A stretch of DNA of 64,000 nucleotides. Origin: Cyanophora paradoxa CCMP329 (lineage: Eukaryota > Plantae > Glaucophyta). A program made the translations under genes and the position numbers. The stretch covers positions 71,197-135,196 of the forward strand of contig QPMI01000412.1 of NCBI GenBank assembly GCA_004431415.1, written 5' to 3'. This document shows, piece by piece, positions 18,291 through 61,506 of the stretch (its first letter is position 1; every line of letters begins with the position of its first letter). Under the pieces are notes generated by a model, which was not told the origin of the DNA, searched no databases, and worked only from the letters and a program-made list of their open reading frames with translations.

Positions 18291-21200
18291 ATGGCTTTCT
18301 TTTTGTCTTCCCAAGCTGAGGTTCGCGCCCGGGCCCGATCTCTAGCTGCCGGAGCCGGCCAGCCATGGAGCATACTAAAACTGCTCTAGCACATTGGTCT
18401 AGAGCATTTTCATTCATCAGAATAACTCGCCGACGCGAGGGGGCGCTGAAGCACACGCCCGCCGGCGCCTCAAATCGCGAGGCCAGACCAGCCTGCCGCC
18501 GTTGCCCCGTTCGCTCTAGATTTGGTATTTAAGAGGTTCATATAAGACTTTGAACGATATGCGCATCGCGCGGGCCCTTCTTGGTTCGCCCGGGGCGCGT
18601 AACGCGTGCTCTCTGCAGGGGGACTTCGCCTTGCGGATCGTGGGCCTCGTGTCGAAGGAGAAGATGCTCACGTCGCTGCTGACGCTCAAGACGGACCTCG
18701 CCGCACGCCTGCGCGAGGCCGGCGTCTCCATCCACCAGGAGGCGCGCCGGGCGCCCCTCCCCGCGCCCCCGCCCGGGCCGCGCCCGAGCCTCGCCGCAGG
18801 GCCAGGGACTGAAGAGCGTGTACCTGGACGTGCAGTCTCAGATCCAGGTCCTAATCCGGGAGCAGCGGGTGCGCCGGCCCCATCCTCCCCCGCGGCCCCC
18901 GCGCCCCCGCCCACGCGCTCCGCCCCAGATCGACTTCCACAAGCTCATGGTTTCTTTTGATTCCTTTTCTCCCGACGCCTCGCCCGGCGGCCGACCGCGC
19001 GGGGCGCAGGCGAAGTGGGAGACGCTGAGGGCGGAGTCGGTGCAGAACCGGGCCCGCTTCCAGAGCGCCGTGGAGCTCCTCGCCGACGAGAAGTGCCCCT
19101 CCCGCGTCCGCGGTGTCCTCGAGCGGTGCGCCGCGCCGCCCGCCCGCCCGCCCGCCCGCCGGCCCACGGCGCCGGCAGCTACTTCTGCTGGAGCGTGCAC
19201 ATGGAGGCGATCCTGCGCGACGTCGCCAGCGCGATGCCCTACGCCTCCCGCCAGCCGCCCCCCGCCGAGCCCCTCGCCTCCCCCTCCCGCGTGCGCCCCC
19301 GCCGTTCCCCGCCCCCCCCGCCCCCGCAGCGCCGACCGCGCCTCACATACGCCGGCCGGCCCGGCCCCCGCAGGTGTACATCGTGGGGGTCAGCACGGGC
19401 CAGACGCCGATCGCGTGCCGGCCGGTGGAGCGGGGGACGCCGCAGAAACGGCAGGAGCAGGCGTGCGAGCCGGCGGAGCTGCCGGAGGGCCTGCGCGCGA
19501 GCGGCAAGGAGGAGCTCCTCGTCTCGATCTCGGGGCAGCTCTGGGAGCTGATCGGGCGGGAGGGGGCCCTCCTCGACGCCTTCTGCGACCTCGCGCGGGA
19601 GCGCACGGAGCTGCGCGCCGCCATCGCGCGCCTGCAGGCCGAGCACGGCACGATCATGGCCCTCGTCGAGACGCTGCGGCGGGACTGCGAGGGCCTCGCC
19701 TCTCAGGCGCGGCGCATGCGGGAGGAGCGGGACGCGGCGCAGGACGAGCGGGCGCTGCTCGTCGCCGCGAACACGGACCTGCGCAAGGCCGCCGCCGCGC
19801 TGGAGAGCCGCAGCGCCTCGCTCGAGGCGCGCCTGATGGAGGGCGAGGCGGCCTCCCGCGGCGGGGCCGAGGCGGCGGCGCCGGGCGCCGCCGCCGCCGA
19901 AGCGGAGGCCCTCGAGCGCGCCCGCCGCCGCGCGGAGGAGGAGCGCACTGAGGCCCTGCAGAGGCGCGCCGCCCGCCCCGCCCCGCCCGCGCGACGGCGG
20001 CGGCCTGACGCCGGGGCGCGGCGCGGCAGGCTGGAGCGGGCGCGGCGGGAGAGCGAGGAGCGCTCGCTGGAGATCCGGCGCCTGCGGGAGGAGCGCGAGA
20101 CGGCGGGGCGGCGGGCGCAGGCGGCGGTGGAGGCGCGGCGGAGCCTGGCGGAGAAGCTCGACGCGGCGCAGCGGCAGGCGGACCAGCGGGGCCGGCGGGC
20201 GGAGGAGCTGGAGGCGCGGCTGCGGCGGGCGGAGGAGGACCGGAGGGCGCTGGAGGCGGCGCTGGAGGAGCAGGCGGGGGAGCGGGAGCGGGCGCTGCGG
20301 GAGAAAGAGCGGGCGGAGGCGGCGCTGCGGCACCTGCGCGGCATCGCCACCAGCGCCTACAACGCCTCCCCCGACGTCTCCCCGCCCCGCTCCGTCTCCC
20401 CGCGCAAGCCCACCCACCGGGAGCGGGAGCGGGAGCTCCCGCCGGCCTGGGGGCCCTCCCTACCCCTCGACTGGTCCGAGCGCATCGCCAACACGAGCCC
20501 CAGCCGGCGCGCCCCGCCCCCTGCCCGCCGCGCTCCGCCCGCTGACGCGGCGCGCAGCGTCCGCTTCGCGTCGTCTTTGGCTGCCCCGCCGCAGGCCCCG
20601 GCGCCGCCTCCGCCGCCGCCGCCGCCGGCGCCGGCCCCGGCCCCGGTCCCGCAAGCAGCGCGTCGGCGGCGGCTGCTGCCCGCGACGCCGTGCTCGCCCT
20701 GCGCCGGTGCGCCGCGCCCCGCCGAGTCGCATCGCGGGTGCCGCCTGACGGGCCGCAGGGAGGAGGCCGCGCGCGCAGCCGAGGCGGCGCGCGCCGCGGA
20801 GACGGCCCGCGCGCTCGAGGCGGCGCGGGCGGAGGCGGCGCGCGCCGCGCAGGCGCCGCTGCCCGTGCCGGCGATCGCGTCGAAGTCGCGCGGGGTCGCC
20901 GGCTTCGTGCCCGCCCCGTCAGCGGCGGCCGCCACGGTGCGATCTGCCGCCCCTGCAGCCTCTCTCCCCGCCGGCGGCGCGAGCGGCGGGCCCCGCGCAG
21001 CTGCGGGGCTCGGGTCGTACGTGTCGACGCGGATCTCGGCCCCCACGGCGGCGGCGGAGGAGGCGAAGGCATTCGTCCCCATCGCCAACCGCCACGGCTC
21101 CTGCGTGCGCATGCGCCCGGGACGGGCCGCGCCCGGCCACCCCCGGCTCCGCGCCGAGCGTCGGGGCGGGCGCAGTGCTTCAAGACGAGCGGGAGGGCGG

Positions 21201-21879
21201 AGGCGGCGCAGGCGTGCGTGGCGTGCGGGCGGGCGGGCTGCCAGGAGCTGGAGGGCCCCCGCCCCCGCGCGGCGCCGCCGGCCCGGCGCGAAGGCGGCCA
21301 GCGACGACGAGGCCTTCGCCGTGCGCCCCGCCCGCCCGTGCCGCCGGCCCCGCGCGGCCGGCCCGGGCCGACGCCGGCGCGCGGGCGCAGTCGACGCGGC
21401 GGGAGGAGCGGACGCGGCGGAAGGTGAGCAACGAGATCGTCGCCGGCGCCGAGTACGCCGCCTACGCCCGCGAGGTGCGCGGGGCGCGCGCGAGCGGGGC
21501 CCGTGGCCTGGCCCGCACCTCCTCACCTCACGCCACCCGGGCGGGCAGTGGGCGCGCGAGGGGGCGGCCTCGGCGCGGGCGCGGGGCGTGGAGGGCGCGA
21601 TGCTGGTGGAGGTCACGGGCGCGTCGCTCAAGCCGACGTCGACGATCGTCTCCCCGAACCGCATCCTCTCCAACCGTGCGGCCCGGCGAGGCGGCCCGGC
21701 AGAGGCGGGGCCCTCGCTGAGCCGAGGGGGCGGGGGGCAGGGATCGAGGAGGTGAACTCGGCGCTGGCGAAGCTGGTGGCGAGCCCCACGCGGGCGCCCG
21801 TCGCGGGGCGCGCCTCGGCCTCCTCCACCTCCACCATCCCCGACGAGATCTGGGGCATCCCCCGCTACCCCGGCCTCTA
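18291..21879 (+). CDS. Uncharacterised coiled-coil protein, multi-exon (start uncertain)
   Basis: Exons GDFALRIVGLVSKEK..., AKWETLRAESVQNRARF..., long E/R/A heptad region (19.4-20.4 kb), ends DEIWGIPRYPGL* at 21879. Confidence 0.7.
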
Positions 21880-22117
21880 GCCTCCCCTCCTTTCCCTGCC
21901 CTGGGGCTCGTCGCCCTTCATGGCCAGTGGATAGCTTGAAGCGGGGCGCCGCGGTTACACAGTCGGCGCCCCATAAAGTACACAGCGCGTTTCCGCGCTA
22001 TCGCAGTGGGCATGCTCTCCCCTGCACCCCGTAATGTAAAGCAACGGAGAGCGGTTTGGTTCAGAACAGAAAGGGGCGCTGCCCGGCGAGGCGCACGGTG
22101 CGCGTGCGGGGCGGGGG

Positions 22118-25100
22118 CTAGCGCTTGGAGGAGGGGCGCGGGATGCGGCTCCCCGGCGTCGCGGCGGGCCCCGCCTTGGCGGCCCCAGACGGCGTCGCTG
22201 GCGTTCCGGGGGCGGCGGCGGCGGCCGCGCGGCGGCGGGCGTGCTGGGGTCGCCGGCACGGAGGCGGCGGCGGAGGGGCGGGCGGGGGTCGAGGGCGCCG
22301 GCGGGGCGGCGCCTGCGGGTCGAGTCGCTTCCTTCTTCGCAGGCGTCGCTGCCGGCGTCCGCCCCGCCAGTGGGCGCGCGGGCGAGGCCGCCACCGCGGG
22401 GCCTTGCGCGTGGCCGCGGGCTCCCCGCCGGCGGGGCCAGAGCGGGCCGCGCGGCGGCCGGGCGGGGCCGCGCGGGGAGTAGGTGGGGATGCGGGAGCCG
22501 GGGGAGGCCGGCTTGCCCGCGGGGGACATCGGGGAGAGGGAGGAGGGGGAGGAGGGCCCCGAGGGGACGGCGATGCGCCGCCCCGCGCGGGCGACGGTGG
22601 CGGCGGCCCCGGCGCCGACGGCGGCGAAGGCCGTCGCTGCGGCCTCGCCGATGGGCACGGGGGCCCAGCCGTCGGCGTACATCGGCGTGCACGCCCCCGA
22701 GCCGCCGGCAGAGCTTAGCTCCAGCGACCGCCGCATGTCTGCCGGCGGCTCAGGGGGCGGCGGGCGGGGAGCGGCGGGGCCGGCCGGCGCACCGAGCAGG
22801 GGCGTGTTGCTGCAGACAGAGGCAGTGGCCACCGAGGCCGGGCCGCTCGGGTAGTAGCCCATCCCCCTGGCGGCGGGTGAGGGGCGCCTGGCGGGGCGGG
22901 GCGGGGCGGGGCAGGGCGGACGCGGAGGCGAGCGGGGCCATGTCGGCCTCGGTGAGGGGCGCGCTGAGGTCGTCCTCGTCATCGGTGTGCGTCGGGGGCG
23001 GCCCCTCGTCGTCGTCGTCGCGGGCCTGCAGCAGGGCGCCCTGCAGCTCCGTCGAGCCGCACGACTCGCGGATGAAGCGCTCGTCGTCCGCCGTCAGGCC
23101 CCCGCTCAGGTCGTCCTCCAGCCCCGCCTCCGCCGGCGGCGGCGGCGACTCCGACCGCAGCAGCGGCGGCGGCCCGTCGCTCGGGCGCCACACGCCGGGC
23201 TCCTCCACCCCGAAGAGCTGCGAGGGGCTCAGGCGGGCCTTCAAAACGGGGCGGGGGCGGGCGCACGTCCTCTGGGGGCGGCGAGAGGGTGGTGCGGACG
23301 ATGGTGCGGCCGCTGGCGGCGAAGGGGTCGCCGCTGGAGAGCATGCGGCGCTCGTCCTCGGTGAGGCCCGACCCGAGCAGCTCGTCGACGGAGCCAAGGG
23401 AGCGCCCCGAAGCCGACGCCACCGTCGGCATCAGCAGCGCCGGGCCCTCGCTCGCCGTCCGCCCCAGCAGCGGGCCCGGCGAGTCCGCCCCGGCCTTCGC
23501 AGGCGTCGCCTCCTCCTTGGCGCGGGGCGAGCGGGGGGCGGGGAGCTGGGCGGCGGCGGTGTGGGCGAGCGCCGCGCGGGGCGAGTCGCCGCGCGGGGAG
23601 GTCCTCGGGGATGCGGCCCCGGGGGAGACGCGGCCGGCCTGCGGGCCCGCGCGGGCGACGCGCCCGGAGACGTCTTCTTCCGCCCGCCCTCCTCCTCCGC
23701 CGCCGCCGCCGCCGCCGCCGCGAGGGCGGGGCCCAGCGGCGGGACCGGCGGGCGCGGGGGCAGGCCCCGGGGCGAGACCATCGCATCGGGGCCGGCGGGC
23801 TCCGCGGCGGCACGCTCGGGCTCCGCATCCACGCGCTGCTTCTGAGGCGGGGGCTCCCGCGTCGGCGGGACTTCCTCGGCGGCGGCCTCGTCGCTCTCCC
23901 GCTGCCGCCGCTTCGCCGGCGATGCTGCAGCCGCCGAGGCGGCCGCCGGAGAGCGCTCGGCGCTCGGGTCCCGCCTCGCCGCCGGCTTGACGGGCGACGG
24001 CTCGCGCTTCGGGACGGGGGGCTTGGCAGGAGTGCTCTCAACGGCCGGCTTGGCGGGAGAGCGCTCGGCGCTCGGGTCCCGCCTCGCCGCCGGCTTGGCG
24101 GGCGACGGCTCGCGCTTCGGGACGGGGGGCTTGGCAGGAGAGCTCTCAACGGCCGGCTTGGCGGGAGAGCGCTCGGCGCTCGGATCCCGCCTCGCCGCCG
24201 GCTTGACGGGCGAAGGCTCGCGCTTGGGGACCGGGGGCTTGGCAGGAGAGCTCTCGACGGCGGGCTTGGCGGGAGAGCGCTCGGCGCTCGGGTCCCGCCT
24301 CGCCGCCGGCTTGACGGGCGACGGCTCGCGCTTGGCGGCTGCAGGTTTGACCGGGGAGCTCTCGACGGCGGGCTTGGCGGGAGAGCGCTCAGTGCTCGGA
24401 TCGCGCTTGCCGGCGGACGGCGCGGCCGCCGGGGAGCGTTCGGCCGACGGATCACGCTTCGACGCCTGCTTGGCGGGCGAGGCAACCTTCTTCTGCTTGT
24501 CGGGCGTCGCGGGCGGCTGCGGGGCAGGCTCGCTGTACGGCTCGAAGCTGTGCCCGGCGGCCTTGGCGGCGCCGGCGCTCTTCTTCTCCGCCTTCTTCTC
24601 CTTCTCCTTCTCCTTGGCGCCGGCCTTCTTCGCGGTCTCCTTCTTCTTTTCTGCGGGGGCGGCCCCGGGGGTGGCGTCCTCCTGGGCGGTGTCCTGGTGG
24701 CGGCCGTGCTTGGCCGGAAGCTCGGCGGACGAGCCGATGGAGGTGCTGGACGCCAGCGCTGGCGGCGACAAGCTGCGCTTCCGCTGGAGCAGCGGCTTGT
24801 CCTCCGCCTCCGAGCCCGCGTTCTCCTGCGCCTTCGAGCGTCGCGCCGCCGCCCGCTTCTTCGCCGAGTCGACGGCGGCCGGAACCACGCAGGCCGCCTC
24901 CAAGAACTCCAGAGAAGTTACGGGCGGGATGCACCGCGCGGCGTCGTCAACTGCGGAGGCCGCCGCGGGGCTCTGCTCCTGCCGCCAAGAGGGCGGTCCC
25001 GCCGGCAGTGTGGGTGACTCGGCAACTGCCGATCGAATGGCGTCAAGAAAAGAGCGAATACACACTTTCTGCACGAAGCCTCGCACCTGGAAAGAAGACC

Positions 25101-25195
25101 GAGCTGGAGACGAGCTCGCCATCTTTCTCCGGCTCTGTGCCGACCGACAGCCCTGCACGCCCGCTGCTGCTTCGCTCCGCAGTGGACAGCGGCGG
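22118..25195 (-). pseudogene. 5'-truncated duplicate of the S/P/K-rich repeat protein gene
   Basis: Same exons as 28244-31302 but cut off at the duplication junction, so it lacks the first exons and promoter. Confidence 0.65.
23948..24460 (-). repeat. Coding 108-bp (36-aa) tandem repeat, about 4.5 units: RDPSAERSPAKPAVESSPAKPPVPKREPSPVKPAAR
   Basis: Unit starts at 23948, 24056, 24164, 24272, 24380. Duplicated at about 30061-30567. Confidence 0.9.
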
Positions 25196-25237
25196 TGCGC
25201 CGCGCCGCCCGCCCGCCCGCCCGCCCGCGAGCCGTCG

Positions 25238-28008
25238 CCCGCGTCCGCGGTGTCCTCGAGCGGTGCGCCGCGCCGCCCGCCCGCCCGCCCGCCCGCCGGC
25301 CCACGGCGCCGGCAGCTACTTCTGCTGGAGCGTGCACATGGAGGCGATCCTGCGCGACGTCGCCAGCGCGATGCCCTACGCCTCCCGCCAGCCGCCCCCC
25401 GCCGAGCCCCTCGCCTCCCCCTCCCGCGTGCGCCCCCGCCGTTCCCCGCCCCCCCCGCCCCCGCAGCGCCGACCGCGCCTCACATACGCCGGCCGGCCCG
25501 GCCCCCGCAGGTGTACATCGTGGGGGTCAGCACGGGCCAGACGCCGATCGCGTGCCGGCCGGTGGAGCGGGGGACGCCGCAGAAACGGCAGGAGCAGGCG
25601 TGCGAGCCGGCGGAGCTGCCGGAGGGCCTGCGCGCGAGCGGCAAGGAGGAGCTCCTCGTCTCGATCTCGGGGCAGCTCTGGGAGCTGATCGGGCGGGAGG
25701 GGGCCCTCCTCGACGCCTTCTGCGACCTCGCGCGGGAGCGCACGGAGCTGCGCGCCGCCATCGCGCGCCTGCAGGCCGAGCACGGCACGATCATGGCCCT
25801 CGTCGAGACGCTGCGGCGGGACTGCGAGGGCCTCGCCTCTCAGGCGCGGCGCATGCGGGAGGAGCGGGACGCGGCGCAGGACGAGCGGGCGCTGCTCGTC
25901 GCCGCGAACACGGACCTGCGCAAGGCCGCCGCCGCGCTGGAGAGCCGCAGCGCCTCGCTCGAGGCGCGCCTGATGGAGGGCGAGGCGGCCTCCCGCGGCG
26001 GGGCCGAGGCGGCGGCGCCGGGCGCCGCCGCCGCCGAAGCGGAGGCCCTCGAGCGCGCCCGCCGCCGCGCGGAGGAGGAGCGCACTGAGGCCCTGCAGAG
26101 GCGCGCCGCCCGCCCCGCCCCGCCCCGCGCGACGGCGGCGGCCTGACGCCGGGGCGCGGCGCGGCAGGCTGGAGCGGGCGCGGCGGGAGAGCGAGGAGCG
26201 CTCGCTGGAGATCCGGCGCCTGCGGGAGGAGCGCGAGACGGCGGGGCGGCGGGCGCAGGCGGCGGTGGAGGCGCGGCGGAGCCTGGCGGAGAAGCTCGAC
26301 GCGGCGCAGCGGCAGGCGGACCAGCGGGCCGGCGGGCGGAGGAGCTGGAGGCGCGGCTGCGGCGGGCGGAGGAGGACCGGAGGGCGCTGGAGGCGGCGCT
26401 GGAGGAGCAGGCGGGGGAGCGGGAGCGGGCGCTGCGGGAGAAAGAGCGGGCGGAGGCGGCGCTGCGGCACCTGCGCGGCATCGCCACCAGCGCCTACAAC
26501 GCCTCCCCCGACGTCTCCCCGCCCCGCTCCGTCTCCCCGCGCAAGCCCACCCACCGGGAGCGGGAGCGGGAGCTCCCGCCGGCCTGGGGGCCCTCCCTAC
26601 CCCTCGACTGGTCCGAGCGCATCGCCAACACGAGCCCCAGCCGGCGCGCCCCGCCCCCTGCCCGCCGCGCTCCGCCCGCTGACGCGGCGCGCAGCGTCCG
26701 CTTCGCGTCGTCTTTGGCTGCCCCGCCGCAGGCCCCGGCGCCGCCTCCGCCGCCGCCGCCGCCGGCGCCGGCCCCGGCCCGGTCCCCGCAAGCAGCGCGT
26801 CGGCGGCGGCTGCTGCCCGCGACGCCGTGCTCGCCCTGCGCCGGTGCGCCGCGCCCCGCCGAGTCGCATCGCGGGTGCCGCCTGACGGGCCGCAGGGAGG
26901 AGGCCGCGCGCGCAGCCGAGGCGGCGCGCGCCGCGGAGACGGCCCGCGCGCTCGAGGCGGCGCGGGCGGAGGCGGCGCGCGCCGCGCAGGCGCCGCTGCC
27001 CGTGCCGGCGATCGCGTCGAAGTCGCGCGGGGTCGCCGGCTTCGTGCCCGCCCCGTCAGCGGCGGCCGCCACGGTGCGATCTGCCGCCCCTGCAGCCTCT
27101 CTCCCCCGCCGGCGGCGCGAGCGGCGGGGCCCCGCGCAGCTGCGGGGCTCGGGGTCGTACGTGTCGACGCGGATCTCGGCCCCCACGGCGGCGGCGGAGG
27201 AGGCGAAGGCATTCGTCCCATCGCCAACCGCCACGGCTCCTGCGTGCGCATGCGCCCGGGACGGGCCGCGCCCGGCCACCCCCGGCTCCGCGCCGAGCGT
27301 CGGGGCGGGCGCAGTGCTTCAAGACGAGCGGAGGGCGGAGGCGGCGCAGGCGTGCGTGGCGTGCGGGCGGGCGGGCTGCCAGGAGCTGGAGGGGCCCCGC
27401 CCCCGCGCGGCGCCGCCGGCCCGGCGCGAAGGCGGCCAGCGACGACGAGGCCTTCGCCGTGCGCCCCGCCCGCCCGTGCCGCCGGCCCCGCGCGGCCGGC
27501 CCGGCCGACGCCGGCGCGCGGGCGCAGTCGACGCGGCGGGAGGAGCGGACGCGGCGGAAGGTGAGCAACGAGATCGTCGCCGGCGCCGAGTACGCCGCCT
27601 ACGCCCGCGAGGTGCGCGGGCGCGCGCGAGCGGGGCCCGTGGCCTGGCCCGCACCTCCTCACCTCACGCCACCCGGGCGGCAGTGGGCGCGCGAGGGGCG
27701 GCCTCGGCGCGGCGCGGGGCGTGGAGGGCGCGATGCTGGTGGAGGTCACGGGCGCGTCGCTCAAGCCGACGTCGACGATCGTCTCCCGAACCGCATCCTC
27801 TCCAACCGTGCGGCCCGGCGAGGCGGCCCGGCAGAGGCGGGCCCTCGCTGAGCCGAGGGGCGGGGGCAGGGATCGAGGAGGTGAACTCGGCGCTGGCGAA
27901 GCTGGTGGCGAGCCCCACGCGGGCGCCCGTCGCGGGGCGCGCCTCGGCCTCCTCCACCTCCACCATCCCGACGAGATCTGGGGCATCCCCCGCTACCCCG
28001 GCCTCTAG
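25238..28008 (+). pseudogene. 5'-truncated, frameshifted duplicate of the coiled-coil gene
   Basis: Begins mid-exon at the junction and ends IPRYPGL* at 28008, with several frameshifting indels relative to copy 1. Confidence 0.65.
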
Positions 28009-31000
28009 CCTCCCCTCCTTTCCCTGCCCTGGGGCTCGTCGCCCTTCATGGCCAGTGGATAGCTTGAAGCGGGCGCCGCGGTTACACAGTCGGCGCCCCA
28101 TAAAGTACACAGCGCGTTTCCGCGCTATCGCAGTGGCATGCTCTCCCCTGCACCCCGTAATGTAAAGCAACGGAGAGCGGTTTGGTTCAGAACAGAAAGG
28201 GGCGCTGCCCGGCGAGGCGCACGGTGCGCGTGCGGGGCGGGGGCTAGCGCTTGGAGGAGGGGCGCGGGATGCGGCTCCCCGGCGTCGCGGCGGGCCCCGC
28301 CTTGGCGGCCCCAGACGGCGTCGCTGGCGTTCCGGGGGCGGCGGCGGCGGGCCGCGCGGCGGCGGGCGTGCTGGGGTCGCCGGCACGGAGGCGGCGGCGG
28401 AGGGGCGGGCGGGGTCGAGGGCGCCGGCGGGGCGGCGCCTGCGGGTCGAGTCGCTTCCTTCTTCGCAGGCGTCGCTGCCGGCGTCCGCCCCGCCAGTGGC
28501 GCGCGGGCGAGGCCGCCACCGCGGGGCCTTGCGCGTGGCCGCGGGCTCCCCGCCGGCGGGGCCAGAGCGGGCCGCGCGGCGGCCGGGGCGGGCCGCGCGG
28601 GGAGTAGGTGGGGATGCGGGAGCCGGGGAGGCCGGCTTGCCCGCGGGGACATCGGGAGAGGGAGGAGGGGAGGAGGGCCCCGAGGGACGGCGATGCGCCG
28701 CCCCGCGCGGGCGACGGTGGCGGCGGCCCCGGCGCCGACGGCGGCGAAGGCCGTCGCTGCGGCCTCGCCGATGGGCACGGGGGCCCAGCCGTCGGCGTAC
28801 ATCGGCGTGCACGCCCCCGAGCCGCCGGCAGAGCTTAGCTCCAGCGACCGCCGCATGTCTGCCGGCGGCTCAGGGGGCGGCGGGCGGGGAGCGGCGGGGC
28901 CGGCCGGCGCACCGAGCAGGGGCGTGTTGCTGCAGACAGAGGCAGTGGCCACCGAGGCCGGGCCGCTCGGGTAGTAGCCCATCCCCCTGGCGGCGGGTGA
29001 GGGGCGCCTGGCGGGGCGGGGCGGGGCGGGGCAGGGCGGACGCGGAGGCGAGCGGGGCCATGTCGGCCTCGGTGAGGGGCGCGCTGAGGTCGTCCTCGTC
29101 ATCGGTGTGCGTCGGGGGCGGCCCCTCGTCGTCGTCGTCGCGGGCCTGCAGCAGGGCGCCCTGCAGCTCCGTCGAGCCGCACGACTCGCGGATGAAGCGC
29201 TCGTCGTCCGCCGTCAGGCCCCCGCTCAGGTCGTCCTCCAGCCCCGCCTCCGCCGGCGGCGGCGGCGACTCCGACCGCAGCAGCGGCGGCGGCCCGTCGC
29301 TCGGGCGCCACACGCCGGGCTCCTCCACCCCGAAGAGCTGCGAGGGGCTCAGGCGGGCCTTCAAAACGGGGCGGGGGCGGGCGCACGTCCTCTGGGGGCG
29401 GCGAGAGGGTGGTGCGGACGATGGTGCGGCCGCTGGCGGCGAAGGGGTCGCCGCTGGAGAGCATGCGGCGCTCGTCCTCGGTGAGGCCCGACCCGAGCAG
29501 CTCGTCGACGGAGCCAAGGGAGCGCCCCGAAGCCGACGCCACCGTCGGCATCAGCAGCGCCGGCCCTCGCTCGCCGTCCGCCCCAGCAGCGGCCCGGCGA
29601 GTCCGCCCCGGCCTTCGCAGGCGTCGCCTCCTCCTTGGCGCGGGGCGAGCGGGGGCGGGGAGCTGGGCGGCGGCGGTGTGGGCGAGCGCCGCGCGGGCGA
29701 GTCGCCGCGCGGGGAGGTCCTCGGGATGCGGCCCCGGGGAGACGCGGCCGGCCTGCGGGCCCGCGCGGGGCGACGCGCCCGGAGACGTCTTCTTCCGCCC
29801 GCCTCCTCCTCCGCCGCCGCCGCCGCCGCCGCCGCGAGGGCGGGGCCCAGCGGCGGGACCGGCGGGCGCGGGGGCAGGCCCGGGGCGAGACCATCGCATC
29901 GGGGCCGGCGGGCTCCGCGGCGGCACGCTCGGGCTCCGCATCCACGCGCTGCTTCTGAGGCGGGGGCTCCCGCGTCGGCGGGACTTCCTCGGCGGCGGCC
30001 TCGTCGCTCTCCCGCTGCCGCCGCTTCGCCGGCGATGCTGCAGCCGCCGAGGCGGCCGCCGGAGAGCGCTCGGCGCTCGGGTCCCGCCTCGCCGCCGGCT
30101 TGACGGGCGACGGCTCGCGCTTCGGGACGGGGGGCTTGGCAGGAGTGCTCTCAACGGCCGGCTTGGCGGGAGAGCGCTCGGCGCTCGGGTCCCGCCTCGC
30201 CGCCGGCTTGGCGGGCGACGGCTCGCGCTTCGGGACGGGGGGCTTGGCAGGAGAGCTCTCAACGGCCGGCTTGGCGGGAGAGCGCTCGGCGCTCGGATCC
30301 CGCCTCGCCGCCGGCTTGACGGGCGAAGGCTCGCGCTTGGGACCGGGGCTTGGCAGGAGAGCTCTCGACGGCGGGCTTGGCGGGAGAGCGCTCGGCGCTC
30401 GGGTCCCGCCTCGCCGCCGGCTTGACGGGCGACGGCTCGCGCTTGGCGGCTGCAGGTTTGACCGGGAGCTCTCGACGGCGGCTTGGCGGAGAGCGCTCAG
30501 TGCTCGGATCGCGCTTGCCGGCGGACGGCGCGGCCGCGGGGAGCGTTCGGCCGACGGATCACGCTTCGACGCCTGCTTGGCGGGCGAGGCAACCTTCTTC
30601 TGCTTGTCGGGCGTCGCGGGCGGCTGCGGGGCAGGCTCGCTGTACGGCTCGAAGCTGTGCCCGGCGGCCTTGGCGGCGCCGGCGCTCTTCTTCTCCGCCT
30701 TCTTCTCCTTCTCCTTCTCCTTGGCGCCGGCCTTCTTCGCGGTCTCCTTCTTCTTTTCTGCGGGGGCGGCCCCGGGGGTGGCGTCCTCCTGGGCGGTGTC
30801 CTGGTGGCGGCCGTGCTTGGCCGGAAGCTCGGCGGACGAGCCGATGGAGGTGCTGGACGCCAGCGCTGGCGGCGACAAGCTGCGCTTCCGCTGGAGCAGC
30901 GGCTTGTCCTCCGCCTCCGAGCCCGCGTTCTCCTGCGCCTTCGAGCGTCGCGCCGCCGCCCGCTTCTTCGCCGAGTCGACGGCGGCCGGAACCACGCAGG

Positions 31001-31302
31001 CCGCCTCCAAGAACTCCAGAGAAGTTACGGGCGGGATGCACCGCGCGGCGTCGTCAACTGCGGAGGCCGCCGCGGGGCTCTGCTCCTGCCGCCAAGAGGG
31101 CGGTCCCGCCGGCAGTGTGGGTGACTCGGCAACTGCCGATCGAATGGCGTCAAGAAAAGAGCGAATACACACTTTCTGCACGAAGCCTCGCACCTGGAAA
31201 GAAGACCGAGCTGGAGACGAGCTCGCCATCTTTCTCCGGCTCTGTGCCGACCGACAGCCCTGCACGCCCGCTGCTGCTTCGCTCCGCAGTGGACAGCGGC
31301 GG
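25238..31302. repeat. Tandem segmental duplication, copy 2 (about 30 nt shorter through many 1-nt indels)
   Basis: Offset to copy 1 shrinks from 6137 to 6107 across the block. Confidence 0.95.
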
Positions 31303-31671
31303 GGCGCTGCTGGCGAACGTGTCCGCAGAGCCCGCAGCCGCGATGGACGAAGCGCCAGCGAGCATTGTGACGGCCGGCGCCGCTGCCGGCACGAGCACGG
31401 TCTCGGCGTCCAGCTCAAGGTCAACATCTTCGACCTTAGCGAGTGCCCTAGCCCCGCCGCGCGCGCTGCGAGTGTGAAACGGTCAAGCGCGGCAATGTTT
31501 TCAAATCAGCTCTGTTCAGGCGCACCCAGCTTCAGCGAACGTTGGGCTGCTTGCGCCACTCAGCGGCCCGAGCGACGTAGGCTGATCGAGAGCCGCTCAG
31601 CAACGCACGGCGCGCGGCGCGGTGGCAGAGAGGTCAGACCTCGTCGAGGGACCGGACTGATTCGGCATCAT
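28244..31671 (-). CDS. Low-complexity Ser/Pro/Ala/Lys-rich protein with 36-aa SPxK repeats (frameshifts in this copy are probably sequence errors; start uncertain)
   Basis: Unique 5' exons at 31.3-31.7 kb continue into duplication copy 2; ends RIPRPSSKR* at 28244. Confidence 0.6.
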
Positions 31672-43384: not shown

Positions 43385-46300
43385 ATGCCTCAGAAATACC
43401 AGACCATCGTGGCGGTGAACAGGCCGACCGCGACGGTACGGCTTCCACTTCTCCGCAGAACTCCGCCGTTCTCACGCCCTTGCAGCTGGGCGCGCAGCTG
43501 GGCGTGATCCTTATTCGACCCGAGGAGCCAATCACGGCGCGAAGCGATCCCGGGAGCGCGAGCACCACCCTGAAGTCACAGAAGACCGACACGCTCGAAC
43601 CGAAGCCGCCACCCACCAATCGCAGACCCAACGATGGCTTTGGACAACCACCTTCAAGGAGGCGCTACATGCAGCCAGAGAAGACGCAGCGCGCGCTAAG
43701 CGGCTTCCTGCAACAGGACTACGGTCTGGACGCGATCGGCGACTCGGATTCCGTGAACAGCGATGAGCTCCAGCTTATCGATGTAGCATACGAAGAAGAG
43801 CTTGGCAAACTGCAACAGCGATTGACGGCCGCGCTCGCCAAGGCTCGCGCTGGAGATCAGGTCAGGTTAAACAAAGGCCACGGCCTGTCGCGACCGCGCA
43901 CGCTGGAAGCACTAGAGAGCTTCATTGCAGCGGTGAGTACTCTTTTCCTGACGGCACCGTGCGCTTGGTTCGAAGGCCACTGCGCAGGAGCTCGCGATCT
44001 TGAAGGAGAGTGGGGATGAAACTGCAGAGTCCCGCCTGCGCATCTACCTGGTCTGTATGGAGCAGCTCTCTGCGGAATTCAAAATCTACGGTCCTCTCCT
44101 AAGCATTATCAAGGTCCGCCGCATCTGCCGCTCGAGGGTTGCGCGGGGTAGCTGTCAGGAACAATCGCCATGCGATGATGATCCATATTCCCTTTCGAAT
44201 GACGCTCGGCACGTCCAAGCCGATGCGATGAATATCACTCGTACTGATCTACGGCGTATTCACATACGGATAATCCGAAATTTTAAACGCTCCTATCGTC
44301 CATAGATTTGCGCTGCCAGCGCGTAAAATAATGCTTGACGTAAGCGCGTTGCACCCTGATGATCCATATTCCCTTTCGAATGACGCTCGGCACGTCCAAG
44401 CCGATGCGATGAATAACCCTCTCGCTGATCGTCGACGCGCCGGACGGGGCCGGGGGTCCCGGGTCGGGCGCCGGGCGCCGGGTCGCTGACGCGCGCCCCG
44501 CAGCGGGAGTTCGTGGCGGCGCTGGAGGAGGGGCGGGCGCGGGAGCGGGAGCTGGCCGGCCTGGCGCTGCTGACGGAGCAGGCCAACGTCAAGAAGGTCG
44601 CCGAGCTCGAGGAGCGCCTCCGCCGCGCCTGCGCACGGGTGCGCCCCGCCGCCACTCACTCCCCGCCCCCTCGCGGCGCTGAGGCGGCGCAGCTGGACGG
44701 AGACGACGACGAGGAGAGCGACGAGGAGCTGGAGGGGAAGGGCATCGCGTCGAACCTCTCCTCGCCCCGCAAGTCGCAGGCCGGCTCGCCCCGGCGCAAG
44801 AAGCGGCGGGCCGGCGGGCGCGGCGGCCCCGAGCTGGCGAGCCTCTCGGCGCAGCTGAAGCAGGCCGCCGACGGGCGCGCCCTCCTCGAGGACCTCCTCC
44901 GCCAGGCGTGCGTCCGGGGCCCGGCCCGCTCGGGGCGCCGCGGGGCGCCGACGGCGGCGGCGGGGCGCAGGCGCGGGGCGTGGGAGCAGGGCGAGGAGGC
45001 GCCGGCGGTGCTCAAGGCGCTGCTGGACAACGCGCTGGCGCCGCCCTCGGGGGAGGCCTCGCCGCGCGGCGACGGGGAGGCCCGCTCGCCACGGCGCTCC
45101 CTCTTCCCGGAGAAGGACCGGCAGCTCAACATGCAGGCGCGGATCAACCAGCTGACGATGGAGCTCTACAAGCAGACGACGCAGAACGCGAGCCTGCAGC
45201 GGGCCGCCGAGGAGCGCATCGACCGGGCGGCCTTCGTGGCGCTGCAGGAGAAGCTCGCGGAGGCGGAGGCGGGCGTGAAGGCGCGGGAGGAGGCGCTGGC
45301 GGCCGGGGAGCAGCTGCTGGGGCGCCGCGAGGAGGAGCTCACGCGCCTCACCGTCCGCCACCACGAGCTCCTCGGCGCCATCCGCGCCTCCGCCGCCGCC
45401 GCAGCGGCAGCCCCGGCACCCCCGGCCCCCGCCACCGCACCCGCCCCCCAAAAGGTCCGCCCCTCGTTTCAGCCCCGCCCTCTTATTGCGTTTTACACTT
45501 CTTGGCCACTACTTCCCCGGCTTCACCACTTCTTTACCCGTTTCTCTGGACCGAAAGCGCCTAAAGGATGATCAAATCATTTCCCTGTTAGTTTGACCCG
45601 GCCTCGAGCCTGGGCGTGAAAATCAAACCTTATGTCTGGACCGCTGAACGCGCTTCGTCCCGCAATCTCCCCTCGCCTAGAGCGGCTAAGGGATTAATCA
45701 CATATTTCCCTGTTAGTATAATTCTGGCCCCGCACCGAAAGCGCCTAAAGGATGATCAAATCATTTCCCTGTTAGTTTGACCCGGCCTCGAGCCTGGGCG
45801 TGAAAATCAAACCTTATGTCTGGACCGCTGAACGCGCTTCGTCCTGCAATCTCCCCTCGCCTAGCGCGGCTAAAGGATGAATCACATATTTCCCTGTTAG
45901 TATGACCCTGGCTTCGAGCCTGGGCGTGAACTATCACATATGTTCGGACCGCTGATGCCGCATCAATTTTTCTGTTTCCGAATAAGAGCGCCCAAAAGGA
46001 TGAACAACTCATTTCCCTGTTAGTTGGACCCTGGCCACGAGCCTGGGCGTGAAAACCAAACCTTATGTCTGGACCGCTGAACACGCGCTCCCCGTCTTCT
46101 CCTTAACGCCCCCCTTTCCCCCAAACGTGAGCGCTTAGAGGATGAATCACATATTTCCCTGTTAGTATGACCCTGGCCTCAAGCCTGGGCGTGAACTATC
46201 ACATATGTTCGGACCGCTGATCCGCGCTCATTTCCCCTCGAGCTCGCTTTTCGTGCCTCCACCGTTGCCGGCCCGCCCCGGATGGCCGACGCGGGCGCGC

Positions 46301-49300
46301 AGGAGCCGCTGGGCCCGTCGGACCTCTTCGACAGCCTGTACATCGCGGAGGTGGCGCCCCCGAAGGCCACCGCCCCCCTCCCCGTCGACCGCCTCGAAAT
46401 GCGTGCGTCAGCCCCCGCCCCGCCCCGCGCCGGCCCCGGGGCGGAGGGTGACGGGGCGGGGCGGCAGGGGAGCTGGGCCTGCAGGAGCGGCGGGTGCGGG
46501 CGGGGTACCTGCTGCGGGGGGCGGCGGTGGAGCGGCAGGCGGCGCTGGAGGAGCTGGCGCACAAGCAGCGCATCTGGGGCGCCATGGAGCTCGAGGTCGA
46601 GGGCCTGCGCGCCGGCCGCGACCGCGACGCGCGCCTCATCGCCGCCCTCACCGCCGACCTCGACGAGGCGCGGCGCGCGCTGGAGGCCTCGCGGGCGGAG
46701 GGTGCCGACGTTCGGGCCGAGCTGCGGCGGGTGCGGGAGACGAGCGCGGAGGCGCTGCTGGACGCGCACCGCGAGGGCGAGCTGCTGCGGCGCGAGATCT
46801 CGGAGCGCATCGAGGCGCTCGCCAAGGCGGAAGGGGACCTCTCGCGGGCCCGCGCCGCCCTCCAGCAGCGCGACGCCCTCGTCCGCTCCCTCGAGGAGCG
46901 CATCGTCTCAGCCCGCCGCGAGGCCGAGGCCGAGGCCGCCTCGCTGCGCTCCGAGATGGAGAAGCAGGAGGCCGCCCTCACCGCCCGCATGGAGGGCGCC
47001 ATGGGCGAGCTCCGCACCGCCCTCGAGGACGCCACCGCCGAGGCCCGCGCCGCCGCCGCCCGCGCCGAGGCGGCGAGCGAGGCCGCCGGGGCGCTGGAGG
47101 CGGAGCTGGGGGAGGCGAGGGAGGCGGGGCGGGCGGAGGAGGCGCGTGCGGCCGGGCTGGAGCGGGAGGCGGCGGTGCTGCGGGTGGACCTCGCGGAGGC
47201 GCGGGAGCAGCTGCGAGCGGCGCGGGAGGAGGCGGCGAACGCGCGGGCGCGGGCCGACAAGGCGGAGGCCGACCTCGAGGCGCTCCACGCGGAGGCCGCC
47301 GAGGCCGCCGAGCGCGCCGCCGCCGCCCTCCACGCCGCCCACCTCGTCCGCCCGCCCGCCCCGCCCGCCCCGCCGTGCTGCCGGGCCCGACGCCGCGCCG
47401 CAGGAGATGCAGGAGCTCGAGGCGGAGAACGCGCGCGCCGTGGCCTCGAGCCGGGGCCGCCGGCCCTCCAACGCCGGCGCGAGCGCCCAGGGCCACCGCA
47501 AGCTGAGCGCCGCGGGAGAGCCGCACGGGCGGCGCAAGTCGCAGCACGCCGGCAGCGGGCAGCGCTCGCGGGCGCCCTCGATCTCGATCGACGCGTCGCC
47601 CGGGGAGGGGCCCCGAGCCCGCTTCCGGGACGCTGCGGCCGCCGAGCACGGAGGCGCCGCGGCGGCGGGGCTCGCGGGAGGTGCCGGGCGGGGCCGGCGG
47701 GCGTCGGAGGCGATCGGGGATGCCCTGGCGCACTTTGAAGCGATGAAGGCGGCGGCCGCGCAGCACGCCGCCGCCTCGCCCGACGAGGGCCCCGACGCCG
47801 AGCTCAGCAGCAGCCTCCACAGCGGCGGCCGCCTCGGCACCGCCCCGACCCGCGCGGGCCGGCGGCCGGCGGGCCGGCAGCCGCGGCGGGGGCAGCCTGC
47901 GGTCGCTGGGGCAGCTGGGGCGGGGCGCGCGGGCGGCGGCGGCGGGCGGCGGGGAGGCGGACCTGGCGCGGCAGCTGCTGGAGGCCCTCGACCACGCCGT
48001 CGCCGGCAGCGACGACGAGGGCGACGGCGAGGGCGAGGGCGCCGCCAGGGAGGCCCCGGCCAGCGCCCCGGCGAGCGCCCCGGCGAGCGGCCTGGCGGAG
48101 TCGATGTCCCGCGGGCGGCGGCTGCAGCAGCGGCGGCGGAGTGCCAGCGCTCGGGCCGGAGCCGGCCTCGGCGGAGGGACGCGGCCGAGCAGCGAGGCGG
48201 GGCCGCGCGCGGCGGCGGCGGGGCCGGCGGGAGGGCGAGGCGGGGCGGGCGAGGGCGGCGAAGAAGAAGGACCGGATGGGCCTGCTGGAGCTGGCGAAGC
48301 GCCTCGGGAGGCCCTCGAGGTGGAGCGCCGCATGCGCGAGGAGGCCGAGGAGTGCGTGGAGGGGATGCGCGCCGAGGTCCAGCGCGAGCGCGACCGCCGC
48401 GCCGCCGACCTCGCCGCCGCCGCCGCGCGGCCGCCTCGCCCGAGGGCTCGGAGGCGACCCCGGAGGAGCGGGTGCGGCTGGTGCGGGCGCACCAGGACGC
48501 CCTGCGCGAGGCCGAGGAGGCGTCCCGCGAGGCCGAGGCGGCGCGCGACGAGGCCGAGGCCCAGCGGCGCGCCCGCGAGCTCCTGGAGCAGGAGCTCGTG
48601 CAGCTGCGGGCGCAGCTGGCGGCCCTGCGGGAGCAGGCGGAGGCGGAGGAGGAGGAGCGCATCCGCTGGGAGGCCGAGCAGCGCGAGCGCATGCGCGCCC
48701 TCGTCCAGGGCGGCGGGGCGGCCCCCGACGCGCCCCCCGCCGAGTCCCCCGGCGGCCTCCGCCCGCCCTCGGGGGGCAAGGACAAGGGCAAGGCGGCCGC
48801 CTCGCCGCGCAAGCGGCCCTCCCTCCTCTCCGTCATCGAGGCGGCCGCCGCCACCTCGCCGCGGAGGCAGCAGCCGCCCCCGTCCCCGGCGGGGCCGCCG
48901 GCGCTGCGGCGGCGGCGGCGCTGGAGGGCGGGTGGAGGCGCTGGAGGGGCGGCTCGGGGCGCTGCTGGGGAGGGCCTCTTCGAGGACGCGCGCTCCCGCG
49001 AGCTCGCCGAGCGGCTGCGGCTGCTCGAGGACCTCGCCGCCCTCGACGCCGCCGACGCCGCCGCCCCCTCCCCCGCCGCCGCCCCGCCCCTCCCCGCGGA
49101 GCCCCGGCGGGGCCGCCCCGCCCCTGGGGGCGGCCGAGCGGGCGCGGCGCGTGCTGGGGATCTTCCGGCGGGAGATGCGGGGCGACCTGCGGCGCGCCTC
49201 CCTGCAGGTCGCCCTCGGCTCGGCGCCCCCTCGCGGCCGCCCTCGGGCCACGCCTCGGCACCCTCGGCGGGGACGGCGCCGCCCGGGGTGCGCTCGCAGG

Positions 49301-49878
49301 CGTGGCTGGGCCGCACGCTGCACGCCATCTACGAGGAGAAGCTCCTCGCCGACCTCGCCGCCTACCGCGCCGGGCCCGGCGCCCCCGTCGAGCCCCTCGC
49401 CTGCGCCGTCCTCGACTGGGCGCAGCGCCGCTACGGCCTGCGGGCCCTCGTGGAGGCGGCCATCGGGGAGCTCGCGCGCGCCGTCGGGCACCACCGCGCG
49501 GCCGCCCCGAGGCGGCCGCCTTCGCCGCCTTCCTCGAGGGGGCGCGGCGCGGGCGCAGCACCTCACCTTCTACCTCACCTGCCGCGCCATGATCTTCGCC
49601 CCGGGGCCCGCCGCCGCCCTCGCAGCCCCGGGCACGGCGGCCCCCGCGGCCCCGGCCCGTTCCTGCCCGGCGAGGCGGGGCGGCGGCAGGTGCCGCTCGC
49701 CTTCGCGCTGGACGTGGCGGCGAAGGCGCTGGAGGGGCCGGCCCGAGGCGGTGGAGCGGGCGGCGGGGCGGCTGCGGGGCGAGGCGGGGCCGGAGGGGGC
49801 GCTGAAGGCGAGCGCGCTGCTGGCGTCGCTGGTGGAGGAGTTCGGGCGGCCCTCGAGGCCTTCGAGGCCCGCGCCGAG

Positions 49879-49913
<35 letters not shown>

Positions 49914-50905
49914 GCGCAGGGCGGCCTCGACTTCGCCGCCTTCGGGCGGCTCGTGCGGCGGCTCCTGCCGGGCTGGCCCGAGGCGGCCGCCCGGCGGCTC
50001 TTCGAGGAGGCGGGCGGGCGGAGGGCCGCCCCTGCCCTCCCCGCCTTCCGCGCCCTCCGCGCCTCCCGCCACTTCTTCATGCAGCGCCTCGCCACGCCGG
50101 CCCTCCTCCGCGACCTCGCCGCCGTCGCCCCCGCCCCGCCCCGCCGGGGCCCCGACGAGGGCGGCCCCGCGGGGACCGCGAGCGCGACCGCGAGCGCGAC
50201 GCGCGCGTGACCATCGCCGAGGGCTCGGGCGGCGAGGAGCCCTCGAGCAGCGACGGCGAGCGCTCGCCCCGGCAGCGCCGCCGCGCCCCGCGCCCCTCCG
50301 AGAAGCAGCAGCAGCAGCAGCAGCAGGGCCGCCGGGCGCGCGGCCGGCGGGGTGGAACGTGCACGGGCACCCGAGCGCGAGCTCGATCCCGGCGGGAGCG
50401 GCGGCGCCGGCGCCCGACACCCGGCGGAACTGGACGCTCTCGGTGGCGGACCTGCTCGCGGCCGGGCCGCGGCGGGGCGCGGGCGCGGGGCGGGGACCCC
50501 GCGTCGGCGTCGACGCCGGCGCTGCGGGAGGCGACGGTGGAGGTGGCGGTGGGCGCCCTCGTGCCCCCGCGCCCCTCGAGAAGGTCCTCGGCATGGTCGC
50601 GAGCCACTGGGCCGGCGTCCGCGACGTCGCCTTCTGGAAGAACTGGCAGGTCAAGCTCGAGAAGACCGCCGCCGCCTCCGCCGCCCCGCGCCGCCGCCGC
50701 AGCCCGCCCGCGCCGAGGCCGTCACGGCGGCCTTCGCCGCGCAGAGGCCGGCGGGGGCCCGTCGGTGCGGCGCGGGCGGCCGCCGATCGCGCCCCTGATG
50801 CTCCCCGCCGAGGCGCACGCCGCCGCCCTCGCCCAGCAGCGCGCCGCCTCCCCGCACGTCGCCTCCGCCGCCTCCCTGCCCCGCGGCTGGGAGGCCGACC
50901 CCTGA
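43385..50905 (+). CDS. Large coiled-coil protein with a TSNAXIP1-like N-terminal domain; snoRNA host gene (3' half shows apparent frameshift errors)
   Basis: LEALESFIAA/ELAIL..RLRIYLVCMEQLSAEFKIYGPLLSIIK/REF; long coiled coils; globular WLGRTLHAIYEEKLLAD..RRYGLRALV segment. Two oversized introns at 44114-44503 and 45455-46302. Confidence 0.7.
44166..44256 (+). ncRNA. Box C/D snoRNA, family 1, copy a
   Basis: C box ATGATGA 44175; D' ATGA; C' GCGATGA; D box CTGA 44244; terminal CGCC/GGCG stem; D' guide ATTCCCTTTCGA complementary to conserved LSU rRNA UCGAAAGGGAAU. Confidence 0.85.
44344..44440 (+). ncRNA. Box C/D snoRNA, family 1, copy b
   Basis: C box CTGATGA 44356; same D' guide, D' and C'; D box CTGA 44425; different terminal stem GCGCGTT/GACGCGC. 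Confidence 0.85.
45555..45655 (+). ncRNA. Box C/D snoRNA, family 2, type A, copy 1
   Basis: AGGATGA 45565, CTGA 45644, stem AAGCGC/GCGCTT, D guide TATGTCTGGACC complementary to SSU rRNA GGUCCRGACAUA. Confidence 0.87.
45682..45735 (+). pseudogene. Truncated, degenerate family-2 type B snoRNA copy
   Basis: C box decayed to GGGATTA, D' to ATAA, 3' half missing; retains ATTTCCCTGTTAGT. Confidence 0.65.
45739..45839 (+). ncRNA. Box C/D snoRNA, family 2, type A, copy 2
   Basis: AGGATGA 45749, CTGA 45828, stem AAGCGC/GCGCTT. Confidence 0.87.
45866..45961 (+). ncRNA. Box C/D snoRNA, family 2, type B, copy 1
   Basis: AGGATGA 45874, CTGA 45952, stem GCGGC/GCCGC, D guide TATGTTCGGACC. Confidence 0.87.
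45986..46090 (+). ncRNA. Box C/D snoRNA, family 2, type A, copy 3
   Basis: AGGATGA 45997, CTGA 46077, stem GAGCGC/GCGCTC. Confidence 0.87.
46128..46230 (+). ncRNA. Box C/D snoRNA, family 2, type B, copy 2
   Basis: AGGATGA 46139, CTGA 46217, stem TGAGCGC/GCGCTCA. Confidence 0.87.
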
Positions 50906-60338: not shown

Positions 60339-61506
60339 AGTCCCGGCTCCCTCCGGACGCTGAGTCTAGTGCGGAACTAGGCAGCCGGCCTTAGTGCTGA
60401 AACTAGGCAGCTGGCGGCGGCGCTCGGGCCGTGGCAGCTAGCTCACTTTTCCCTCCGAGACCCCTCTCCCCCACCCCCCCTCTTTCTCTTCCTCACTCTT
60501 TTCTCACGCCCAACCCGGCCGGAAGTGCCCTCCCCCCCCTCCCCCCTCCCCCCCCCCACAGGGCCACGAACAGCAGCCTCCAGCAGACCTCCCCACGCTC
60601 CGACTCCGTCACGTAGCTAGCAACGGCGTGGTAGCATGGTAGCAGAGCAATAGAGCAAGATAAGGTGCCCCCCCAGTCGATGTTCACGACGGGGCGGCGG
60701 CTGTTGTTCTTTTAATACGACCATTGCCCGGTTGGGCTTTTGCAAAAAAAACGTTGTACATGTGCTTGTCACTGTTTCACGAATATGATCACTAGCCAAA
60801 AAGATTGATTGAATCGATACTATGATATCCGGGCTCAGCGGCTCCGGGATCCGGAGCTCGAGAACACAAATTGATGCTCGATACTACTATGATATGGGCC
60901 CGGGGCCGGAGTCCGGATCCGGTGACCCCACGTTTAACGGTTGTGAGGCCCCGCCTGGGGCCTGCTGCATGCGCAACGTTAACTGGCACTGCGGCAATTA
61001 ATATTTATATATGCCGGGCGCCATATATGCATGATGATCATGATCACGAGCACTGATCATGCATATGCATATTGACTCACTGAGCTCGAGTCAGTGCCAC
61101 GGTGAACTCAGAATTCAGAACTGAGAATGAGCGGCTGAGGCGCTGAGGGTGCGATAATTGCGGAGGCCGCCGACTCCTCGGCATATGCATGCAAGCCGGA
61201 AACTTCATTTCGTGTGAAAAAACATTCAAAGCCCTAGAAACACGAAATCATATCGCTACCCTATCGTACAGCTACCTGCATGTTAGCTGATCGTGAGCCT
61301 GGCCGCTGCTGCCTCGGGCTTGCCGCTGTTCTCGTTCTCTCAGCCCAAGTACAGGTGAATCCTACACTAGTACGGCAACGGAAACGAAGACTCGCTGGGC
61401 CTATGGAAAATAGCTGTCCTACAGATCTGCGAGCGCTACGGATGCAGCATCTCGATGTCGACGGAAACGCTGGATGGGCTCGAGCAAGCTACCAACAGGT
61501 CCGGCA

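Follow-up and report, generated by a model that had tools for sequence, protein, structure and literature searches.

What do the repeats of about 83 nucleotides (nt) that lie in an 848-nt intron of the glaucophyte Cyanophora paradoxa CCMP329 encode? The intron sits in a window (the whole stretch of DNA analysed, 64,000 nt; contig QPMI01000412.1, positions 71,197 to 135,196) of G+C-rich eukaryotic DNA with introns of 50-65 nt. A first-pass annotation, made from the letters alone, had read the repeats as an intronic polycistronic cluster of small nucleolar RNAs (snoRNAs) belonging to the box C/D class. Our analysis points to box C/D snoRNA genes, five paralogues with two guides each, within a single intron of a C. 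paradoxa gene with a TSNAXIP1_N domain, a reading to which we give a probability of roughly 0.86. The anatomy of the units, a purifying pattern of variation and the splicing of the intron all bear the earlier claim out.

Splicing is directly visible. An 848-nt GT..AG skip joins the exons in contigs of two RNA studies (runs X1 and X4) and the flanking exons are in frame, which supplies the RNA sequencing (RNA-seq) confirmation of 45455-46302 that the annotation had called for. Scanning the window on both strands for pairs of C box and CTGA yielded five units within 45565-46220, two in 44175-44428 and one weak intergenic match; this last (61031-61146) was rejected as a unit, being intergenic, weak in its stem and unrepeated. 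From C box to CTGA the full units occupy 45565-45647, 45749-45831, 45874-45955, 45997-46080 and 46139-46220 (82-84 nt each), and the order along the intron is A, half B remnant, A, B, A, B. The five units of about 83 nt, their alternation between types A and B, and the one decayed copy had all been described before, and all were found:

45455..46302, + strand: array intron, 848 nt, GT..AG, phase 0; spliced joint in X1 and X4, frame kept
45555..45655, + strand: u1, type A; C box 45565-45571, D' guide 45581-45592, D' box 45593-45596, C' box 45616-45622, D guide 45631-45642, D box 45644-45647; stem AAGCGC/GCGCTT
45683..45733, + strand: decayed type B 5' half; C box and D' box mutated, D' guide intact, no 3' half
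45739..45839, + strand: u2, type A; core 45749-45831, same sequence as the u1 core
45866..45961, + strand: u3, type B; core 45874-45955; stem GCGGC/GCCGC
45986..46090, + strand: u4, type A variant; core 45997-46080; stem GAGCGC/GCGCTC
46128..46230, + strand: u5, type B; core 46139-46220; stem TGAGCGC/GCGCTCA; D box ends 82 nt from the 3' splice site

Each full unit follows one plan. The 5' part consists of the C box AGGATGA, a 9-nt linker, an invariant 12-nt D' guide and a D' box (TTGA, ATGA or TGGA); the 3' part of a hairpin (CCC-GGC-loop-GCC-T-GGG), CGT, GA, a linker, a 12-nt D guide, a G and CTGA. The C and D boxes stand 82-84 nt apart in the five copies, inside the 60-100 nt expected of box C/D RNAs, and the motif running from C box to D' guide occurs five times where none is expected (100 shuffles). 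A CGT bulge plus GA is standard kink-turn geometry, and this is what follows the internal stem CCC-GGC/GCC-GGG, invariantly, in all five units. With an NNGA D' box in five of five, the internal D'/C' pair is able to form a kink-turn or K-loop. The C' box had been put at GGCGTGA, which has no GA at the kink-turn positions; the bulge and GA therefore place it at GTGAAAA/GTGAACT, 3 nt further downstream (45616-45622 in u1).

Terminal stems of 5-7 base pairs (bp) close all five units, and predicted folds form this stem in u1, u3 and u5 but not in u4. Folding z-scores computed for entire units (0.04 to -2.8) are weak, which is normal for C/D RNAs. The four stems that the annotation had quoted as co-varying are present, whereas the covariation itself is modest: the copies share a GCGC core, the two compensatory changes among four distinct copies are too few to test, and only in u4 and u5 does an arm pair with its own partner at least as well as with any other. 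A clustered regularly interspaced short palindromic repeat (CRISPR) array or a satellite was rejected on the units of about 100 nt, the low-complexity spacers of 24-37 nt and the single 184-nt dimer, and a transposon was rejected on anatomy.

Variation among the copies avoids the boxes, guides and inner stem. In an alignment of the four distinct cores, changes fall in 2 of the 54 functional columns and in 19 of the remaining 31 (p 5e-9, indicative only, the column classes having been drawn after the copies were seen). This supports a purifying pattern. The history of the array is also visible, in one tandem duplication:

45550..45917, + strand: 184-nt tandem duplication (45550-45733 / 45734-45917)

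The duplicated segment takes in u1, one spacer and the leading part of a B unit. Between its two copies there is a single difference in the first 131 nt and there are 9 in the last 53 nt (p 6e-5), the latter differences including the C and D' boxes of the remnant. Found by alignment and profile search, the remnant has GGATTA for a C box and ATAA for D' (profile match 45678-45737, E 4e-14, with a model built from these same copies); the profile search found no further copies in the window. The remnant is the product of decay after truncation by the duplication, and the birth-and-death of copies that had been proposed is seen in this diverged end. The array would have grown by tandem duplication of an A-B pair, one event leaving a decaying half copy. 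The statement that the spacers mostly differ holds for three inter-copy spacers, which are unrelated; it fails for the u1-remnant and u2-u3 spacers, which are near-identical because of the duplication. The X1 contig over 45473-45699 departs from the window at four letters, of which the one listed, 45661 C>T, matches the second copy. Four is also the number of copy differences there, which points to a collapsed path or an allele lacking the duplication. The X4 contig 45463-45708 runs from u1 into the start of the remnant without differences.

We computed guide pairing on eukaryotic ribosomal DNA (rDNA) found as contamination in public contigs. Among rDNA loci L001-L077, only those with a non-animal small-subunit (SSU) tag served as targets. 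One pass recorded G+C and SSU tag, with a human-type tag in none; unplaced loci, including G+C-rich ones, that are possibly animal or human (L005, L020, L029, L047, L063) were not used again. Yeast numbering comes from the L016 rDNA, whose 18S-to-25S distance of 2551 nt is as in budding yeast. Many bacterial assemblies (L004-L077) carry such contaminating contigs, several of them budding-yeast-like.

The D' guide pairs over 12 bp with the large subunit (LSU) in six of six rDNAs, with A2934 (yeast numbering) at +5; shuffled guides did as well in 0/150, 8/150 and 0/150 cases on three rDNAs. The type A D guide forms 13 bp with an algal-type SSU, with C1215 (yeast numbering) at +5 and 0/150 shuffles as good, and the type B D guide forms 12 bp on rDNA reading GGUCCGGACAU, again with 0/150. 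At 12-13 bp these duplexes fall inside the 10-21 nt expected of a box C/D antisense element, with a Watson-Crick pair at +5. At guide positions 7-8, type A has UC and type B CU. Against a GG target, as on L076, each pairs with one G-U, whereas B mismatches an AG target; the differences thus fit one shared target, and the C. paradoxa SSU is predicted to read GGUCCGGACAUA. Arabidopsis 18S Cm1219 corresponds to human Cm1272, and neighbouring table rows are offset by +4 to yeast (PMC8583080 Table 1); it follows that Cm1219 is yeast C1215 and, with an offset of +1, that 25S Am2935 is yeast A2934 (PMC8583080 Table 1). RiboMeth-seq has mapped methylation at both +5 positions in Arabidopsis (PMC8583080 Tables 1-2; PMC8053127 Table 1), where SnoR166 guides Cm1219 and SnoR18 guides Am2935 (PMC8053127), the latter with its 5' guide (PMC8583080 Table 2). 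SNORD66 guides human Cm1272 (PMC9941101). The first-pass annotation was therefore right in assigning the D guide to the human Cm1272/SNORD66 site; its account of the guides was incomplete in that the invariant D' guide to LSU A2934 had been missed. By the +5 rule, these RNAs are predicted to direct two ribosomal RNA (rRNA) methylations, at the equivalents of LSU A2934 and SSU C1215.

In the mechanism that we propose, the units would be transcribed along with the host precursor messenger RNA (pre-mRNA), the intron itself being observed. From the anatomy, Snu13, Nop56/58 and fibrillarin would assemble on the kink-turns, terminal C/D and internal C'/D' alike, and the spacers would be cut and trimmed to leave RNAs of about 90 nt. 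The D' guide would then direct 2'-O-methylation of the LSU adenosine equivalent to yeast A2934/Arabidopsis Am2935, near the A-loop, and the D guide methylation of the SSU cytidine equivalent to yeast C1215/Arabidopsis Cm1219/human Cm1272. Extra copies probably raise the dose, the expression of the host being presumably unrelated to ribosome making. Units sharing one intron cannot all be freed by end trimming, so internal cuts are needed if all mature, and endonucleolytic release unit by unit is what we infer. Pyrimidines make up 62-78% of the inter-copy spacers, which have practically no structure and thus no evident hairpin of the RNase III type. A transfer RNA (tRNA) scan of the window found none, and thus no tRNA-snoRNA dicistron.

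Several points weigh against five functional snoRNA genes. No Rfam family reached its gathering score in the window or on single units, which is how the Rfam scan that had been suggested turned out. All five C boxes read AGGATGA, with G for the consensus U at position 2 (RTGATGA/RUGAUGA). The guide pairing rests on the rDNA of other eukaryotes, and type B pairs only if the C. paradoxa SSU reads GGUCCGGACAUA, an A there giving a mismatch at guide position 7. Mature-sized RNA did not turn up: the intronic contigs (four runs, depth about 3) span unit plus spacer and may be pre-mRNA or DNA; contigs show presence at most, and cannot show RNA ends. Structure prediction found no Rnt1-type hairpins in the inter-copy spacers. 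The C' boxes keep the U, and the units of the upstream 390-nt intron of the host have consensus C boxes.

The rivals take up these points in different ways. The snoRNA genes could be real and the cluster not fully cut, with only the last copy maturing efficiently by splicing-linked trimming, or with stable multi-unit RNAs. Vertebrate intronic C/D snoRNAs keep a conserved position relative to the 3' splice site (PMC8162545), and the last D boxes here, 82 nt from it in the array intron and 75 nt in the 390-nt intron, lie near that position; these distances may recall the vertebrate rule, or may be chance. Stable multi-snoRNA forms occur in Ostreococcus (PMC7671301), every intronic contig covers more than one element, and the spacers are without a structured cleavage signal. 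We nevertheless consider incomplete cutting unlikely, as upstream copies are conserved as well as the last and keep their own terminal stems while the half copy decays; nor can the contigs, blind to RNA ends, speak for it.

It is less likely still that the RNAs are real and one guide is aimed elsewhere or fails to methylate. One candidate is the D' guide acting on SSU 859-869 (11 bp, 2 G-U, +5 at A863), where it forms its second-best duplex, an 18S match seen in yeast and in two further rDNAs. Another is a dead or retargeted type B D guide, this guide being at chance level on yeast rDNA (66/150 shuffles). Am2935 is unmapped in tomato and tobacco (PMC11542601) despite the conservation of snoR18 in land plants (PMC5122169). 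Set against this, the LSU duplex is longer, recurs in six of six rDNAs and is the known SnoR18 target, and both A/B differences are G-U against the GG target of L076, fitting one shared target. To a non-functional intronic satellite, or snoRNA pseudogenes alike only through recent duplication or gene conversion, we give hardly any weight. The identical u1 and u2 cores, the evidence for RNA from contigs and not mature molecules, and the missing Rfam match would suit such a reading, but variation spares boxes, guides and stems, three of the spacers between copies bear no relation to one another, the remnant has changed far more quickly than the intact copy beside it, and both guides fall on known methylation sites.

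The preferred reading places the five genes in a host whose own identity is partly legible. A match to TSNAXIP1_N above the Pfam cut-off lies in the exon preceding the 390-nt intron, and an exon-by-exon Pfam search gave later exons a coiled-coil look and no family; the coiled-coil host that had been proposed is thereby upheld. Its features around the array are:

43985..44111, + strand: host exon piece, part of the TSNAXIP1_N domain (PF15739, E 1.5e-6, 28.9 bits, cut-off 27); in spliced contigs
44114..44503, + strand: 390-nt intron with two C/D units of another family (44175-44247, 44356-44428)
44972..45454, + strand: host exon 5' of the array intron, ending ...APQK; frame, spliced contigs
46303..46403, + strand: host exon 3' of the array intron, starting EPLG...; frame, spliced contigs

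Neighbouring host introns comprise six of 50-65 nt and the one of 390 nt (44114-44503). The other listed host introns being 50-65 nt, it is the two oversized introns that hold the C/D units. The 390-nt intron is also spliced in RNA contigs, and no intronic contigs were found for it in the four runs. Its units share a D' guide that pairs over 12 bp with LSU A1588 (yeast numbering), an equivalent of which was not found among the sites of the Arabidopsis methylation table; their D-side elements differ between copies and gave no convincing target. Further along, the 3' part of the host gene (window 47400-50905) has apparent frame slips in G+C-rich stretches, probably assembly errors. Elsewhere, at window 19000-31500, tandem-repeat rows that match one another some 6,137 nt apart mark a segmental duplication of roughly 6.1 kb, and both of its copies contain a 108-nt repeat present about 4.2 times (23948-24406, 30061-30514).

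Comparison with known snoRNAs separates the two halves of the unit. Weak Rfam matches to SorX, sR9, sR17, sR46, SNORD12 and mir-4860 were dismissed as chance-level. With u1 alone the 5' half aligned weakly to snoZ102_R77 (RF00359; E 8.3, 14.7 bits against a gathering score of 40), which we infer from two shared targets to be the snoR18 family. In common with land-plant snoR18/snoZ102_R77 the units have the C box, about 20-21 nt, the D' guide UUUCCCURUURGU and a UUGA-type D' box; as in snoR18, the guide against LSU A2934/A2935 lies about 20 nt past the C box. They differ in a longer D'-C' hairpin and in the 3' guide, which in snoZ102_R77 is mostly against 18S A162 (yeast A164), near 1413 in a few, and here against C1215. 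When metagenomes were searched for a C box followed by the D' guide, the matches listed comprised 80 loci; snoZ102_R77 scored above threshold in 13 of 15 tested, often in tandem. The 3' guide of most copies targets 18S A164 (yeast), the second SnoR18 target, Am162. A C1215 guide stood beside that D' guide in 0 of the 80 loci among the matches listed, and a pattern with both guides (LSU A2934 plus SSU C1215) gave 0 matches. Tandem snoZ102_R77 arrays reach five copies in L119 (2679-3941) and four in L107 (2470-3963), so that tandem copies are common to both systems. Five snoZ102_R77-type loci (L095, L104, L122, L125, L131) carry a 3' guide against 18S near 1413 (yeast) and not A164, a second partner for the same D' guide in some lineage.

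For the SSU half, Arabidopsis SnoR166 (At1gCDbox47.1) and human SNORD66 share the target, Cm1219 being Cm1272 (PMC8583080 Table 1; PMC8053127; PMC9941101). The Cm1219 site is listed as the 5' target of SnoR166 and is read by the D (3') guide in Cyanophora. Human SNORD66 is a single intronic copy in EIF4G1 (PMC3025573 table). Single units gave no Rfam match to SNORD66 even at E 10, and are a functional analogue only. In function the unit thus appears to combine a snoR18-like 5' half with a 3' half like that of SnoR166/SNORD66; by score it belongs in neither family. A comparable short element presumably lies 5' of the C1272 guide in human SNORD66, and would push the pairing further back in time. 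Since the shared target itself accounts for much of the 5' likeness to snoR18, that likeness need not mean homology; that the pairing of LSU A2934 and SSU C1215 guides, not found in land plants, joins a 5' half truly homologous to land-plant snoR18 is a tentative view that we hold somewhat short of even. If true, the LSU Am2935 mark, mapped only in Arabidopsis, would date to the common ancestor of Archaeplastida, and guide halves would have been re-paired between lineages. Two rRNA methylations are predicted in any case, with a sharp prediction on the C. paradoxa SSU sequence; the Am2935 equivalent is thought Arabidopsis-specific among mapped plants (PMC11542601).

As a system the array is of a kind already known, and by itself it does not explain the cutting of such clusters. 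Intronic multi-isoform snoRNA clusters are known in plants, Chlamydomonas and Ostreococcus, and those of Chlamydomonas, rice and Ostreococcus likewise hold several snoRNAs per intron, often isoforms, in one precursor (PMC7671301). Unlike them, the cluster described here is from the glaucophyte lineage and its host is not tied to ribosome biogenesis. Our literature search found no paper on Cyanophora snoRNA genes, and glaucophyte snoRNA genes are apparently undescribed in the literature searched. What is new here is the family, the guide pairing and the lineage, the layout being already known from plants and green algae; intronic multi-copy clusters extend to glaucophytes.

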